A DNA stretch of 64,000 nucleotides from Octopus sinensis (lineage: Eukaryota), in assembly GCF_006345805.1 (NCBI RefSeq), contig NC_043009.1, forward strand, positions 19,096,001 to 19,160,000. Direction: 5' to 3'. Each line of letters opens with the position of its first letter. The first letter of the stretch is position 1. Shown here piece by piece: positions 6,084 to 16,340 of the stretch. Both the position numbers and the translations under genes were made by a program. A model generated the notes under the pieces. That model was given only the letters and a program-made list of their open reading frames with translations, had not been told where the DNA came from and searched no databases.

Positions 6084-9000
6084 GCCTGCTCAAAGACTTG
6101 CACAATGTTACGTAAACGCCGGATGCTCCATTGATGATATCAAACCTAATTTAGTTTTATGCGGTAAGAATATTGTTTCTTTCTTTGTCTTTCTCTCTAT
6201 CCGTATATTTTCTTTTTATTAATCCTTTATCTTTCATAATTCCTTTGTTAGTTCAGTTTATTATTGTCCTTGTAATGATAGATACCACTTTACAGAAATC
6301 AAACATTATCGGATGAAGTTATTAAGTCCTTGTTCCTGGCTGGGCTGAAGTTCATCAAATCCGATATCAATGATTCAGGTGACATATACCAATGGTTAGC
6401 ATATCAGTATTTCACTTCATTTGCAGTGATTTCGATTCTCTTGTTTATACTCAAACATTCTCGGAAGATTATATATTTTATCTAGTTTTTTAGGTAAATT
6501 TCATCAATGTGCACGTGACAGAAAATATTCTTACTTTATATTGCTAATTAACTAATTAGTCGCCTGTTTATTTGACACAAGGTATTTGTGAACTGGTACC
6601 TACATCATACTGATATATCTGTGTTCTAGAGGGAAATCTGAAAATTGTCAGGAAAACGTTAAATACCTAAATGACAGTATACTGTATTTATAAGCAGTAT
6701 TAATGTGAATTAAATTAAATTATAAATAGAAATTATTCAGAAATATATATAAAGGGAAAAGTATTTTAGCAAAACAACCTCAGTATGTATATGTATTGAA
6801 TATCCGTTGATATTCTGTTGTAGCTTGTGAAGAAGTTTGCAGAACTGAGATCTCGGCCATTGTTTCAGCAGCAAATGCCTCCATTGATTTATTGTGCAAG
6901 TAAGTGACGATAAATTATTGTTCATGTCAATAAATCCCACAGGAAAGAATTTCCGTCCAATCCTTTCTTTGCAACATCTTGAGTGCCTTACAAATATTTA
7001 TCAATGATCTTGCTTCAGTTTTTCAGGTACTTGCTTCGAATTTTGTGATTCTGATTCTAAGTTAAATGTCTAAAGTCTACCATTTCCTTGCTTCTACATT
7101 GATTAATCACCATTGTTTCTTATGTGATGCAGTATGCTAAATTTTGTACAGAGGCACTATAGTCTTTTGAATTAACACAAGTATATCACTGGTACTTAAT
7201 TTTATATCAACCTCGATAAATGTTAAATTCAACCCTTTCGATGTTTGGAGAGTAGAAGAACAAAAGTAACTAACGTAAGTCTGGTGCTTTACTTTCGGTT
7301 ATATTAAATCACGACTCATCATGAATTAAATGAAAAGCTTATTGATTGAATTAAAAAAAAACGGGATATGGTCTACTTAACTATTTGATTTTTTTTTATT
7401 TGCAGTAATTATCGCAAGTATGGCGACTGTCTGAAAAGGTATGGTTGCACAAAACGAGACTTGAGGTTGACGAATATCAAGAGACTGGATGAATGTAAGT
7501 ATTACTTGGTGTAAATAAACAAATACATACGTATAACAGTAAAACAATGTAGAACGATTCAAGGCTTAACTTGAATTGCAAGCAAATACATATCGTGTTT
7601 AACAATCTGTTTAGCACAACACATTGTTGGATGAGTGGAAAGTGGTTTACTATATTAAGATGTCTGTGCATATTCATATTTTACATTAATATTTTACAAG
7701 TATAACTGTTTGGCTGAGAAGTTCACATCGAACAAGTATTTTCTACTTTAAGCCCAGTCTGACCAATGCCTTGTAAATGAATTTGCTTGGCAAAAAATGC
7801 GTGGATGCCCGTCCTATATGCGTGTGTCTCTCCATGCGTATCTTTCTATTTGTACTGATACCATTTAACAACCACTGTTCGCTCTTTTGTGCACCCGTAA
7901 CTTAGCAGTCGGCAAAAGAGCCGATAAAGTAAGTGTTAAAGTAAAAAATTAATTAGTACTGTGGTCATGATGGAGCTCCCGTATGGTCGTAGTCGAATGA
8001 CTGAAAGAAGTATAAGAAGAAAATACAGCTTATACTGTGGAAAATTCCTTTTATAATCTCTCGACTAAAGATCAGCTTCAATGTTAGGCATTGTGTTGTA
8101 ATAATTCAGGTTAACAGAGAAGGTGGCAAGCAACACCGAAGGGTGTACTGAATAAGGTATATCAGTACCGATGAGCGAGATGGAAATATAGAGTACTGGA
8201 ATCGGTTAAACATTCACGAGGCTTGGTATCACTGATGACCCACAGGGTTTGGAAGCGAGGGACCTTGATATCTATCTCCCCCTCCCCCTCTCTCTCATAT
8301 ATATATATATATATATATATATATATTTTCCTTTTGCAAATACCGATAGGGCACAGAAATTGTGTCAATAGCCAGCTGGAGAAGATGTTCTCCTGGGCCT
8401 ACAAACTACAGTAACATCCACCCTTAGTGGTTAGCCATATTCAGATGGCAACAAATATACTTCACACACACACACACACACACACACACACACACACATA
8501 CACACACACACACACACACACACACACACACATATATATATATATATATATATATATATATATATATATATATATATATATATATATATATATATATATA
8601 TATATATATAGGATGTGGCAGAAAGGTTGCCCCGATTTCAAAGGTTAATAAAAAAACAAACACATGAAGATACAAGAAAAATCTTTGGATTTCTACAACA
8701 AATTTACGCTGCTGCTCTGCAATCCAGGCCATGGTGGGTACTACCTGAAGCAGAATAAATAAAAGACATTTAATGAACTTCACAGAAATACAAAGTTTTT
8801 ACATGTGTTTGTTATTTATTAACTTTTGAAATCAGGCAACCTTTCTGCCGATCCAGTTTTATTCAGCAGCTAATTCCTTCTTTTTATTTCTGCACCTACA
8901 CATGTTTCTGCAGAAATTAACTAATGCACAATGCAAAATTTGCATCTTTATGTCCACTTATTGTTAGTTTCCACTCCTTCAAGGTCGAATCAATCTCATT

Positions 9001-15000: not shown

Positions 15001-16340
15001 ATATTGTTTTGATTTTGTTGACTACATAGTATTGTATGGTCAGTTGGGCACCGTCTTTGAGACAAACAGCACCACTCTGCCAGAAATTTGGAAACAACAT
15101 GCTGTACTGCCTGGCACGCACCAGAAGCTCCAATACGAACAGATGGTGAACACACAGAACAACCGTTGGCTTGCCGGCTCCCCAAAACATGTACCGAGAG
15201 TAATAAAAATCTATCATCCAGTCAACATTATGGTGCTTGGAGTGATCACCAGTGATGGCGACGTTATGCCTCCATTCATCTTCCCACACAACCTCAGACT
15301 CAACCCAGAGGCCTACATCAAGTGCCTGGAAGAGGTAGTGCTGCTCTGGATCAAGAGAGTGGCTGCTGGAAGACCCTATATCTGGCAACAGGACTCTCAC
15401 CATGCCACACAAGAAGGAGAACCCAGTTATGGTTGTCAGACAATTTCTGTGACCACATCACCCCTAACACCTGGTCACCAAACTCCCCAGACTTCAACTC
15501 CCTTGATTATGTGTGGGGCGTAGTTGAGCGGGAGACCAATAAAACTTGTAAAACCAAAGATGAACTGAAGGCAAGGATTATGGCAGCATTCACCAACTTA
15601 AACAATAAGACCGTCCAGACTGTGTCGGTGAAATTTACGTGTAGTTTCGATTTCTTGTAACGGTGTTGGAACCTGAAAAGTGTCATAGAGCCAATCCATA
15701 GGTATTTCTACTCTTGTTGGTTCCTCTTCCATGACTCTTTCCTTAAGCTGATTTCTATGTCTCCTTTCTATTCCATTCCTGCTTCTTACACCATACATCA
15801 TTCTCCCTATGTATGTTACATTTCTCCTTCTTCTTAATGCTTTTTTTCAGCCCTCGTTACTGTTGTAAAGCGGTCTTTTATCACTTTTATATGTCTTTTG
15901 ACGATGATTGTCGCTGTGACAGATACTGTTATATTCTGAAGTCGTCGATAGAATGCTTCTATCTGGCACTGTACGACTCCTCAAAAACTTGGATTGTTAT
16001 AACGTCTATTCAGTATCACAGTATAATTACTATATCAGCACAGACACGACTATCAACACAGTCTACACGTACTCTCGACCTTCTGACAGACTATTGGTCT
16101 ATTTATAATGGCTGTGTACTACCACTTGTTACCGGGAGGGGTGTACAGTTTCACTATGAACAACATGTAAGCCTTTTGCTTAAATATCGACTTAAAAGAT
16201 TTTACCACTGATATTCTTTCTATTTTACAGGTCCCTGTTTCGAATACTGTGATTCTGGTTCCAGATTAGCAGGGTTTTTAAGTCAACCATTTTTTCTCGT
16301 ATTCTTCCTACTAACTGTTTATATCCTACCAATATATTAA
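6084..16340 (+). CDS. Cys-rich, probably GPI-anchored protein; intact exons 6084-6163, 6824-6899, 7406-7494, 16231-16340 (5' end unresolved)
   Basis: Consensus splice sites (cag|..|gtaaga, tag|..|gtaagt, cag|..|gtaagt, ttttacag|) and compatible phases 2-1, 1-2, 2-1, 1-stop. Spliced product PAQRLAQCYVNAGCSIDDIKPNLVLCACEEVCRTEISAIVSAANASIDLLCNNYRKYGDCLKRYGCTKRDLRLTNIKRLDECPCFEYCDSGSRLAGFLSQPFFLVFFLLTVYILPIY*; CxCxxxC is rebuilt across two junctions. Confidence 0.65.
8611..8854. mobile_element. Tc1/mariner-type MITE
   Basis: About 55-bp imperfect TIRs (ggatgtggcagaaaggttgcccc... / ...ggcaacctttctgccgatcc) next to a TA run. Confidence 0.75.
9120..10605 (+). mobile_element. Penelope-like element with inverted pseudo-LTRs
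   Basis: RT motifs GTAMGT...P.FSNL and KRYLDDCF; about 240-bp diverged inverted arms 9120-9362 and 10358-10605. Confidence 0.75.
11135..11290. repeat. (ATT)n microsatellite
   Basis: Direct reading. Confidence 0.95.
11335..12505 (-). mobile_element. Extremely AT-rich Penelope-like RT remnant with internal inverted repeat
   Basis: NYLNVNFNL...PFHK.NE..RYINAYSNHLP and LS.DLETFNKHAPYYNKAL resemble the Penelope RT C-terminus; about 125-bp inverted arms at about 11975-12100 and 12380-12505. Confidence 0.6.
12680..12900 (+). mobile_element. Tc1-like transposase 3' fragment
   Basis: ACQQFRSRIEAFIEEEGKFVE. Confidence 0.6.
13440..14800 (+). mobile_element. Decayed RTE-clade LINE interrupted by a SINE
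   Basis: RVKQECVFFPILFG (GVKQGCVL-type motif), FTNLGSTIT, and KRIPKELICGEL near 14585. Confidence 0.65.
14277..14517 (-). mobile_element. Full-length tRNA-derived SINE with TSD
   Basis: Head ggcggcgagctggcagaaacgttagcac..gagttcaaattcc; TSD tgactc(g/a)agtatata..tttc at 14254-14276 and 14518-14538. Confidence 0.9.
14930..15625 (+). mobile_element. maT/DD37D-like transposase remnant
   Basis: HPVNIMVLGVITSDGDVMPPFIF, YIWQQDS, WSPNSPDFNSLDY. Confidence 0.75.
15630..15810 (-). mobile_element. Gypsy post-integrase tail fragment
   Basis: RRHRNQLKER...EIPMDWLYDTFQVP. Confidence 0.45.
15851..16166 (+). pseudogene. Relic of the Cys-rich family immediately upstream of the GPI exon
   Basis: CRCDRYC (CxCxxxC) and LDLL...YNGC motifs; acceptor ttttttcag before 15851; donor gtaagc at 16167; wrong phase for the terminal exon. 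Confidence 0.35.

Follow-up and report, generated by a model that had tools for sequence, protein, structure and literature searches.

Secreted, cysteine-rich repeat proteins with a GPI anchor are common. Two helical, cysteine-rich extracellular modules often found on such anchored proteins are the fungal CFEM domain and nematode DUF19. The octopod repeat unit described here resembles these two by analogy only: the number and order of the cysteines differ, and neither domain was listed in Pfam scans at E ≤ 10, including DUF19 (PF01579), to which the first-pass annotation of this DNA had loosely likened the repeat. A nearer comparison is offered by GFRα1-4, GFRAL, GAS1 and Drosophila Gfrl, which, like the predicted product of the octopod gene LOC115218684, are secreted and consist of tandem cysteine-rich alpha-helical modules with a CxC motif, followed by a C-terminal GPI anchor (putative in the octopod protein). 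GFRα, GAS1 and Drosophila Gfrl are helical, cysteine-rich and GPI-anchored, and ten cysteines in each domain define the GDNF/GAS1 family (PMC3527400). These ten cysteines lie in a domain of ~80-100 aa, whereas LOC115218684 has six in each unit of ~50 aa.

Identification of the exons and the gene

The window, a 64-kb stretch of the Octopus sinensis genome (64,000 nucleotides of NC_043009.1), contains the last four coding exons of the conserved octopus gene LOC115218684 at positions 6084-16340. The features are as follows.

6084..6163, + strand: coding exon, fourth from last, "B" exon of repeat unit 4 (PAQRLAQCYVNAGCSIDDIKPNLVLC); in phase 2, out phase 1
6824..6899, + strand: coding exon, "A" exon of repeat unit 5 (ACEEVCRTEISAIVSAANASIDLLC), with an NAS sequon; phases 1 to 2
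7406..7494, + strand: coding exon, "B" exon of repeat unit 5 (NNYRKYGDCLKRYGCTKRDLRLTNIKRLDE and the first base of a Cys codon); phases 2 to 1
16231..16340, + strand: terminal coding exon, with the stub (C)PCFEYC of a sixth unit, the candidate omega region DSGS, the spacer RLAGFLSQP, the hydrophobic tail FFLVFFLLTVYILPIY and a TAA stop
16510..16515, + strand: candidate polyadenylation signal, the first AATAAA past the stop, 170 nt downstream (by position only)

All four exons have canonical splice sites, with an AG acceptor after a polypyrimidine tract (tttccag/G, gttgtag/C, atttgcag/T and ttttacag/G, in order) and the donors GTAAGA, GTAAGT and GTAAGT (G/gtaaga, AA/gtaagt and T/gtaagt). GTAAG is found at only 46 places on the window's + strand, so that three strong, correctly phased donors far exceed chance expectation. 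When spliced, the four exons give a single open frame of 117 codons up to the stop, PAQRLAQCYVNAGCSIDDIKPNLVLCACEEVCRTEISAIVSAANASIDLLCNNYRKYGDCLKRYGCTKRDLRLTNIKRLDECPCFEYCDSGSRLAGFLSQPFFLVFFLLTVYILPIY, in which 117 of 117 residues are identical to aa 206-322 of XP_029644475.1 (O. sinensis LOC115218684, 322 aa). Exon 6084..6163 corresponds to aa 206-231 (100%), 6824..6899 to aa 232-256 and 16231..16340 to aa 288-322. The same annotated protein was found by phmmer with the contiguous 33-aa translation of 7398-7496 (E 2.3e-11). The gene had been taken as unannotated in the first pass, which is wrong: RefSeq holds this exact model, and orthologous models are present in O. bimaculoides (XP_052828339.1, LOC106879637), O. 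vulgaris (CAI9731646.1) and Argonauta hians (the "LOC115218684" protein). The public name of the product is "uncharacterized protein LOC115218684", and all octopod orthologue entries carry names of the uncharacterized or hypothetical kind. The orthologue identifiers were found in no searchable paper, and the literature on octopus GPI or Cys-rich proteins contained nothing about LOC115218684.

LOC115218684 spans ~113 kb in O. sinensis, with ~12 coding exons. Its 5′ exons are located upstream of the window; a Cys-pattern search and tblastn with the full protein found none of them in positions 1-6083. An Rfam scan of the window gave no RNA family. The window, O. sinensis and Argonauta all have a PAN-domain gene in opposite orientation downstream of LOC115218684. 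The orthologue group represents the same gene, with exon structure, Cys pattern and PAN-domain neighbour in common, and the window product does not differ in sequence from the O. sinensis entry; CAI9731646.1 differs from the other orthologue models in having another 3′ end.

The junctions 6163/6824, 6899/7406 and 7494/16231 are also present in the O. bimaculoides XP_052828339.1 and Argonauta models. The Argonauta exons 27348-27427, 28054-28129 and 28824-28912 are equal to those of Octopus in length (80, 76 and 89 nt) and phase, and the Argonauta terminal exon 29974-30092, which encodes SCFQFCNAGSRESSFLNNQLGFLFCLLLLFTNSIVSKF, is in the same phase as 16231..16340. Between Octopus and Argonauta only exons could be aligned, with 71-73% nucleotide identity; for exon 6084..6163 the identity was 73%, and its flanking introns were unalignable. 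The dN/dS value for the mature part (92 codons) was 0.08; synonymous sites were close to saturation. Every Cys position and spacing is conserved, as are the positions of the sequons N135 and N249. LOC115218684 is under purifying selection and strongly constrained. Gene models and conservation therefore confirm the four exons and three junctions, as they had been proposed from the raw sequence. A chance assembly of exons, or a dead pseudogene fragment, was suggested by a first word-index protein search with the spliced 117-aa query, which returned nothing; that search missed the orthologue cluster and was a false negative. The exact RefSeq match, the low dN/dS, the Argonauta exons of identical length and phase, the restriction of conservation to exons, and the three strong donors with four strong acceptors refute this reading, to which we give practically no weight.

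Repeat units and two-exon modules

The full protein consists of five tandem units of 44-70 aa with six cysteines each, in the pattern C-x3/4-C-x10-18-C-x5-8-C-x5-12-C-x11-29-C. Unit 5 is followed by a short CxxxC stub and then by the GPI-type tail. In the window product the spacing is CxCx3C-x18-C-x8-C-x4-GC-x15-CxCx3C, with x11 in the preceding partial unit, so that the Cys repeat of ~55 aa reported initially was correct, including its x11/x15 alternatives. When the two half-repeats were aligned, five Cys and one G matched, and 23 out of 2000 shuffles that preserved composition scored at least as high.

Two exons (phases 1-2 and 2-1) make up each unit, and the CxC motifs are all interrupted by phase-1 introns. 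The earlier observation that CxC is assembled across introns holds for both motifs in the window and extends to 5/5 in the complete Argonauta gene, where the phases of the ten introns alternate between 2 and 1 at equivalent positions in each unit. From this arrangement of phases, it follows that the array expanded as a two-exon module with phase 1-1 was duplicated in tandem. For the alignment of units, MAFFT did not place the paralogues correctly, either as single units (A2) or as overlapping double units (A3). Alignment A4, which leaves out unit 3 and covers four paralogous units in up to three species, was usable and has eight invariant Cys columns.

Predicted fold and comparison with known families

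Structure prediction of unit 5 with the stub (62 aa) by AlphaFold2 on A4 gave a model with pLDDT 82.4 and pTM 0.67, in which helices occupy residues 2-5, 7-15, 21-37 and 51-55. This model was built on nine sequences, and the single 62-aa unit was the only part modelled confidently; the full-length prediction on four sequences was poor (pLDDT 44.5) and was left out of the fold search. The predicted fold of each unit is a small bundle with three main helices, presumably stabilized by disulfides. Foldseek with the unit model found nothing significant among 37 matches (best E 1.3). The best neighbours, the RAMP1 ectodomain and the RGM N-terminal domain, are, like the modelled unit, small three-helix bundles outside the cell that are braced by disulfides, and RGMs carry a GPI anchor; however, their similarity to the unit model was non-significant (E 1.3-9.6, TM 0.31-0.44, 16-22% identity), their Cys patterns are different and they show no tandem repetition.

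The first-pass annotation had also noted a loose resemblance to the GDNF/GAS1 domain (PF02351), and LOC115218684 could in principle encode a highly diverged protein of this family, i.e., a GPI-anchored co-receptor in which the ten-Cys domains were remodelled into overlapping six-Cys units. PF02351 was nearly the sole Pfam family found at E ≤ 10 on fragments, with 14.3-15.5 bits on unit 5, the other being one chance Peptidase_C34 match. When a ten-Cys window is slid over the protein, the spacings 1,3,18,8,5,15,1,3,18 can be compared with 6,5,10,8,4,21,1,4,11 in GFRα1 D2, and the x8, x4-5, CxC and x3-4 elements are common to both. The known members are likewise helical, cysteine-rich and GPI-anchored (PMC3527400). 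However, the Pfam score is under the gathering cut-off of 22 bits and decreased to 10.1 bits (E 1.4) once the tail was removed. Matches were obtained with 1/9 single units and 2/9 double units, all of them involving unit 5 of O. sinensis and O. bimaculoides, two near-identical species; units 1-4 and the Argonauta orthologue were not matched. The full-length proteins of O. sinensis, O. bimaculoides, O. vulgaris and Argonauta did not match PF02351, and those of three species matched no Pfam family at E ≤ 10. The hhalign probability for the unit profile against GFRα1 D1-D3 was 1.7%. Searches of PDB sequences by phmmer and with profiles gave no GFRα and nothing relevant, the sole match being 5v2o (E 0.12), and GFRα was absent from the 37 Foldseek matches, although GFRα1, 2, 3 and GFRAL are in PDB. 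In addition, the protein has six Cys per unit with a period of 44-70 aa, and the ten-Cys pattern of the family (PMC3527400) arises only by overlapping neighbouring units. The link to GDNF/GAS1 therefore fails on a sub-threshold, irreproducible Pfam score and on the hhalign and Foldseek results, and we regard descent from this family as improbable. The LOC115218684 protein belongs to no described family, and neither its sequence nor its predicted fold matches a Pfam family or a solved structure.

Putative signal peptide, C-terminal tail and alternative 3′ ends

Signal-peptide and GPI calls were made by rule. The N-terminus in O. sinensis and O. vulgaris, MFLEGMFVLTVVAGCYA/EC, which is encoded outside the window, is signal-peptide-like by inspection. 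The signal peptide is weak in Argonauta (MMASSAAVVGCYA), whose model may be wrong at the N-terminus. At the other end of the Octopus protein, the small residues at DSGS are followed by the 9-residue spacer RLAGFLSQP and by 16 hydrophobic residues up to the stop, with a mean Kyte-Doolittle value of 2.43. The Argonauta tail has the same layout, NAGS, RESSFLNNQ and then LGFLFCLLLLF, with 28% sequence identity to the Octopus tail. The C-terminus thus shows the small omega and omega+2 residues, the polar spacer of ~8-12 aa, the hydrophobic run to the C-terminus and the lack of a cytoplasmic domain by which a GPI signal is recognized. The first reading of a GPI-type C-terminus is borne out by this rule, with Argonauta preserving its kind and not its sequence, and a GPI (lipid) membrane anchor on the protein is probable.

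The donor at 7494 is used differently in the O. vulgaris gene model. The features concerned are as follows.

7495..16230, + strand: last intron, 8.7 kb (1.06 kb in Argonauta)
11425..11464, + strand: alternative micro-exon (YDKYLNKIYHNSDK), joined to donor 7494 in O. vulgaris CAI9731646.1 (tblastn, 100% match)
11572..11584, + strand: second micro-exon of CAI9731646.1, (K)ALL and a stop (pattern search)

The 7494/16231 junction is therefore challenged in part, in that CAI9731646.1 connects 7494 to 11425 and loses the tail; but the exon at 16231 has an Argonauta counterpart and the one at 11425 has none. Micro-exon 11425..11464 sits in AT-rich microsatellite DNA (26% GC), and it is probably a prediction artefact or a minor anchor-less isoform.

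This O. vulgaris model, which ends without a hydrophobic segment, bears on another explanation, in which the C-terminus is no GPI signal: the protein would be a type I membrane protein with nearly no cytoplasmic tail, or its main product would be a soluble isoform ending in micro-exons 11425 and 11572. The 16-24 hydrophobic residues in Octopus could indeed cross a membrane. However, the hydrophobic run in Argonauta is only ~11 residues, which is too short for a transmembrane helix and typical of GPI signals. After the Octopus tail there is no basic stop-transfer residue; Argonauta has a single Lys, one residue from the end. The tail also evolves like a signal, with its composition retained and its sequence free (dN/dS 0.59 and the low identity given above). 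As for the soluble form, the alternative exons would lose the conserved CxxxC stub, in addition to their microsatellite location and their absence from Argonauta. We consider a C-terminus without a GPI signal unlikely, and the GPI-type signal is retained as the preferred reading.

Taxonomic range and proposed role

A word-index protein search with the full protein, of limited sensitivity, found one cluster and the Argonauta orthologue only; all orthologues found were from octopods, with one gene per species. Within that sensitivity, LOC115218684 is apparently octopod-restricted and single-copy. The idea of a lineage-specific cell-surface family is supported as to a lineage-restricted protein with a predicted surface location, but not as to a family, since a single gene was found per octopod genome.

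Taken as a whole, it is quite likely that the four exons are the end of a single-copy octopod gene for a secreted, five-unit Cys-rich protein with a putative signal peptide, a stub and a GPI-type signal, which would be displayed on the cell surface. The protein would enter the ER, where up to 16 disulfides would form and where it could be N-glycosylated, possibly at the two positionally conserved sequons. Cleavage would then occur at one of the small residues of DSGS (NAGS in Argonauta), and transfer to GPI would bring the protein to the outer leaflet of the plasma membrane, where it would form a rigid, beaded scaffold with a binding or co-receptor role; it may thus have a surface binding function. 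At the level of mechanism this is unsurprising, and the gene model is already public. The agreement of all four short exons, read from raw sequence, with an independent RefSeq model validates this kind of short-exon gene finding. The gene is a constrained orphan with very regular two-exon modules, which makes it a clean candidate both for a family of extracellular domains that would be new and for study in octopods as a lineage-restricted surface molecule. More tentatively, the six-cysteine two-exon helical module might be a new domain that originated in the octopod or cephalopod lineage or became unrecognizable through divergence there, and the five-module GPI-anchored protein a lineage-specific receptor or co-receptor, analogous but not homologous to GFRα/GAS1. 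If this is true, its partner and tissue might be relevant to biology particular to cephalopods.

Repeats and a decayed exon copy in the introns

The last intron in Octopus is enlarged by repeats, including a mariner-like transposase fragment at ~14930-15660 (weak DDE_3 match). A further feature lies in intron 2.

7027..7140, + strand: decayed duplicate of the terminal exon, reading (C)TCFEFCDSDSKLNV, with a stop at 7071-7073 and the tail part frame-shifted

This copy showed 71% identity over 87 nt to the terminal exon and its acceptor by blastn (E 3e-9), and tblastn gave CFEFCDSDSKL. No counterpart was found in the Argonauta gene region. The copy at 7027 is a relic of the tandem duplication process.

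Four exons of an annotated octopod gene

In the AT-rich, microsatellite-laden DNA of the window, the first-pass annotation had proposed four short exons coding for a cysteine-rich repeat protein. The exons, their junctions, the peptide and the Cys spacing were all reproduced in our analysis, with canonical splice sites and an identical RefSeq model.

6084-6163, + strand: exon 1, phase 2 to phase 1, donor GTAAGA
6824-6899, + strand: exon 2, starting in phase 1, donor GTAAGT
7406-7494, + strand: exon 3, phase 2 to phase 1, donor GTAAGT
16231-16340, + strand: terminal exon 4, starting in phase 1 and ending with TAA

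Each exon is preceded by a polypyrimidine tract and AG, and GTAAG occurs only 46 times on the + strand of the 64 kb window. The intron phases are symmetrical across the four exons, and the GC content was 35-42% in the exons, as compared with 29-35% in the introns. The joined exons form a single open frame of 117 codons with the stop TAA. Two half-repeats were aligned with five Cys and one Gly in register, and 23 of 2000 composition-preserving shuffles reached the same score.

An exhaustive HMMER search of 1.84 billion proteins, using the 33-aa contiguous translation of 7398-7496, gave a single match (E 2.3e-11), CAI9731646.1, "Hypothetical predicted protein [Octopus vulgaris]" (303 aa). Three further entries fall into the same 90% cluster, i.e., XP_029644475.1, "uncharacterized protein LOC115218684 [Octopus sinensis]" (322 aa), XP_052828339.1 (O. 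bimaculoides LOC106879637, 227 aa) and XP_014784784.1, a partial O. bimaculoides model of earlier date. The four-exon product is 100% identical to the last 117 residues of XP_029644475.1, and this identity covers both the tail and the 7494/16231 junction. The C-terminus of O. bimaculoides is the same except for a few substitutions. The gene had been called unannotated, but the same model is already present in RefSeq, though unnamed. Its identifiers were found in no searchable paper. It is an already annotated, uncharacterized and conserved octopod gene.

When the full protein was used as the query of a word-index search, a relative in Argonauta hians (320 aa, 64% identity) and no paralogues were found. 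The spliced 117-aa peptide had no match in this search, and the cluster was found only with the full-length query. The negatives of this search need caution, because it missed a protein with 78 consecutive residues identical to the query; the single-copy and taxonomic-restriction claims derive from it and carry this known false negative.

Conservation of the locus

No 5' exons were detected in 1-6083 of the window using the Cys pattern and tblastn with the full protein, because the gene models span about 113 kb in both O. sinensis and O. vulgaris. The Argonauta locus is compact (25 kb). Eleven coding exons were mapped there, and phases 2 and 1 alternate along the ten introns, with a phase-1 intron interrupting every CxC motif. 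The last four exons are 80, 76, 89 and 119 nt long, and their counterparts in the window have 80, 76, 89 and 110 nt. When window 5500-17500 was compared with the Argonauta locus DNA, only exons 1-3 were aligned (71-73% identity), and the introns gave no alignment.

The Nei-Gojobori dN/dS between Octopus and Argonauta was 0.08 for the mature part (92 codons; pS 0.74, near saturation) and 0.59 for the tail (25 codons). We conclude that this is a real gene that experiences strong purifying selection. A PAN-domain gene lies downstream on the opposite strand in Argonauta, in O. sinensis and in the window, and therefore, the synteny is conserved.

31136-31492 and about 37290-37346, - strand: exons of a multi-PAN/apple-domain gene (PF00024, 29.7 bits, above the cut-off)

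A Logan genomic contig of a related species (SRR11869391) showed 79% nucleotide identity over window 30362-31903.

Repeat architecture

By inspection, the N-terminus resembles a signal peptide (MFLEGMFVLTVVAGCYA, with the boundary before EC) ahead of five units of 44-70 aa with six Cys each, followed by a CxxxC stub and the tail. The intra-unit Cys spacings are 3-4, 10-18, 5-8, 5-12 and 11-29, and the mature part contains 32 Cys. Their number and spacing are essentially the same in Octopus and Argonauta, with one loop off by one residue, and two N-glycosylation sequons are kept in position. Octopus and Argonauta share 58-73% identity inside the units; the value for the tail is 28%. The best-conserved stretch, which begins at the end of unit 3 and continues into unit 4, is GTWILxKxCRCVNxCAKEQLEYWPxCGPxQRLAxCY, a candidate interaction surface.

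Each unit consists of an "A" exon and a "B" exon, and therefore, the array arose from a two-exon module of phase 1-1 that was duplicated in tandem. A relic of module duplication is located in intron 2 (7027-7140, + strand). This decayed copy of exon 4 includes the acceptor and matches exon 4 at 71% identity across 87 nt (E 3e-9); its reading stops after KLNV, the tail part is shifted out of frame, and no counterpart is present in Argonauta.

The C-terminus

The Octopus tail consists of DSGS, the spacer RLAGFLSQP and 16 hydrophobic residues up to the stop (mean Kyte-Doolittle 2.43), while that of Argonauta has NAGS, RESSFLNNQ and a hydrophobic core of 11 residues, a length insufficient for a transmembrane helix. 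The layout is conserved although the sequence is free to change, and these properties, together with the short Argonauta core, lead us to favour a GPI signal by a rule-based call. With its small residues, spacer and hydrophobic run, the Octopus C-terminus supports the GPI-type tail proposed earlier.

Splicing of donor 7494 to a different exon had been named as evidence against the proposal. The O. sinensis model uses 7494/16231, whereas in the O. vulgaris model two micro-exons replace the conserved GPI-tail exon as the 3' end.

11425-11464, + strand: micro-exon 1, joined to donor 7494
11572-11584, + strand: micro-exon 2, joined after micro-exon 1

Both are located in AT-rich microsatellite DNA (26% GC) and have no Argonauta counterpart, and straight read-through of the first in the window reaches TAG at 11466-11468. 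In our view, they represent either a minor isoform or an artefact of gene prediction.

Family and fold

A loose likeness to the GDNF/GAS1 domain (PF02351) or DUF19 (PF01579) had also been suggested. The full-length proteins of all species tested gave no Pfam match at E <= 10, and DUF19 was absent from all Pfam scans. PF02351 scored 14.3-15.5 bits (cut-off 22) only for unit 5-containing fragments of O. sinensis or O. bimaculoides, with removal of the tail lowering the score to 10.1 bits. Neither Argonauta unit 5 nor any of units 1-4 gave this match. Using A4, a nine-row alignment of four paralogous units (unit 3 left out) from up to three species, hhalign gave 1.7% probability against GFRα1 D1-D3, and PDB sequence and profile searches returned no GFRα.

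AlphaFold2 was unreliable for the full protein with four sequences (pLDDT 44.5). For unit 5 plus the stub with A4 (pLDDT 82.4, pTM 0.67), it predicted a small helical bundle with helices at 2-5, 7-15, 21-37 and 51-55. Foldseek of this model against the PDB gave nothing at E <= 0.001 (best E 1.3); the matches were generic three-helix proteins, i.e., the RAMP1 ectodomain, the bS20 ribosomal protein and the RGMC N-terminal domain, with no GFRα, though the library holds many GFRα structures. The defining feature of a GFRα-like domain is a set of ten Cys (PMC3527400), whereas each unit of the octopus protein has six. From this difference and the profile and fold tests, GDNF/GAS1 membership is not supported. 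Of the earlier interpretation, the exons and the GPI-type tail remain, while the unannotated status and both family likenesses do not.

The octopod protein is probably GPI-anchored and built of an undescribed six-Cys helical module. By analogy, it may work like the GPI-anchored helical GDNF/GAS1 co-receptors. It would enter the ER for disulfide formation and glycosylation, and transfer to GPI would follow cleavage within the DSGS region. At the cell surface, it would then be displayed as five rigid helical beads in a row, which might serve as a binding or co-receptor scaffold.

Transposase fragments and repeats in the window

The last intron is 8.7 kb in the window versus 1.06 kb in Argonauta, and the transposase copy at 15 kb contributes to this growth.

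14930-15660: Mariner/Mos1-type transposase fragment, weak DDE_3 match at 15.3 kb
35507-35845, - strand: Mariner/Mos1-type transposase fragment, HTH_48, 49 bits, at 35.5 kb
38608-39000: Mariner/Mos1-type transposase fragment
3403-3619 / 4718-4934: inverted repeat upstream of exon 1, 217 nt, 97%
11941-12100 / 12378-12537: inverted repeat in the last intron, 160 nt, 96%
14284-14427 (- strand), 43867-43956 (- strand), 47733-47819 (+ strand): short interspersed repeat

Both near-perfect inverted repeats look like foldback or MITE-like elements. The broken ORFs at 19685-21848 (+ strand) weakly resemble reverse transcriptase and zf-RVT and are probably a decayed LINE-type retroelement. The three copies of the short interspersed repeat have a common spurious translation.
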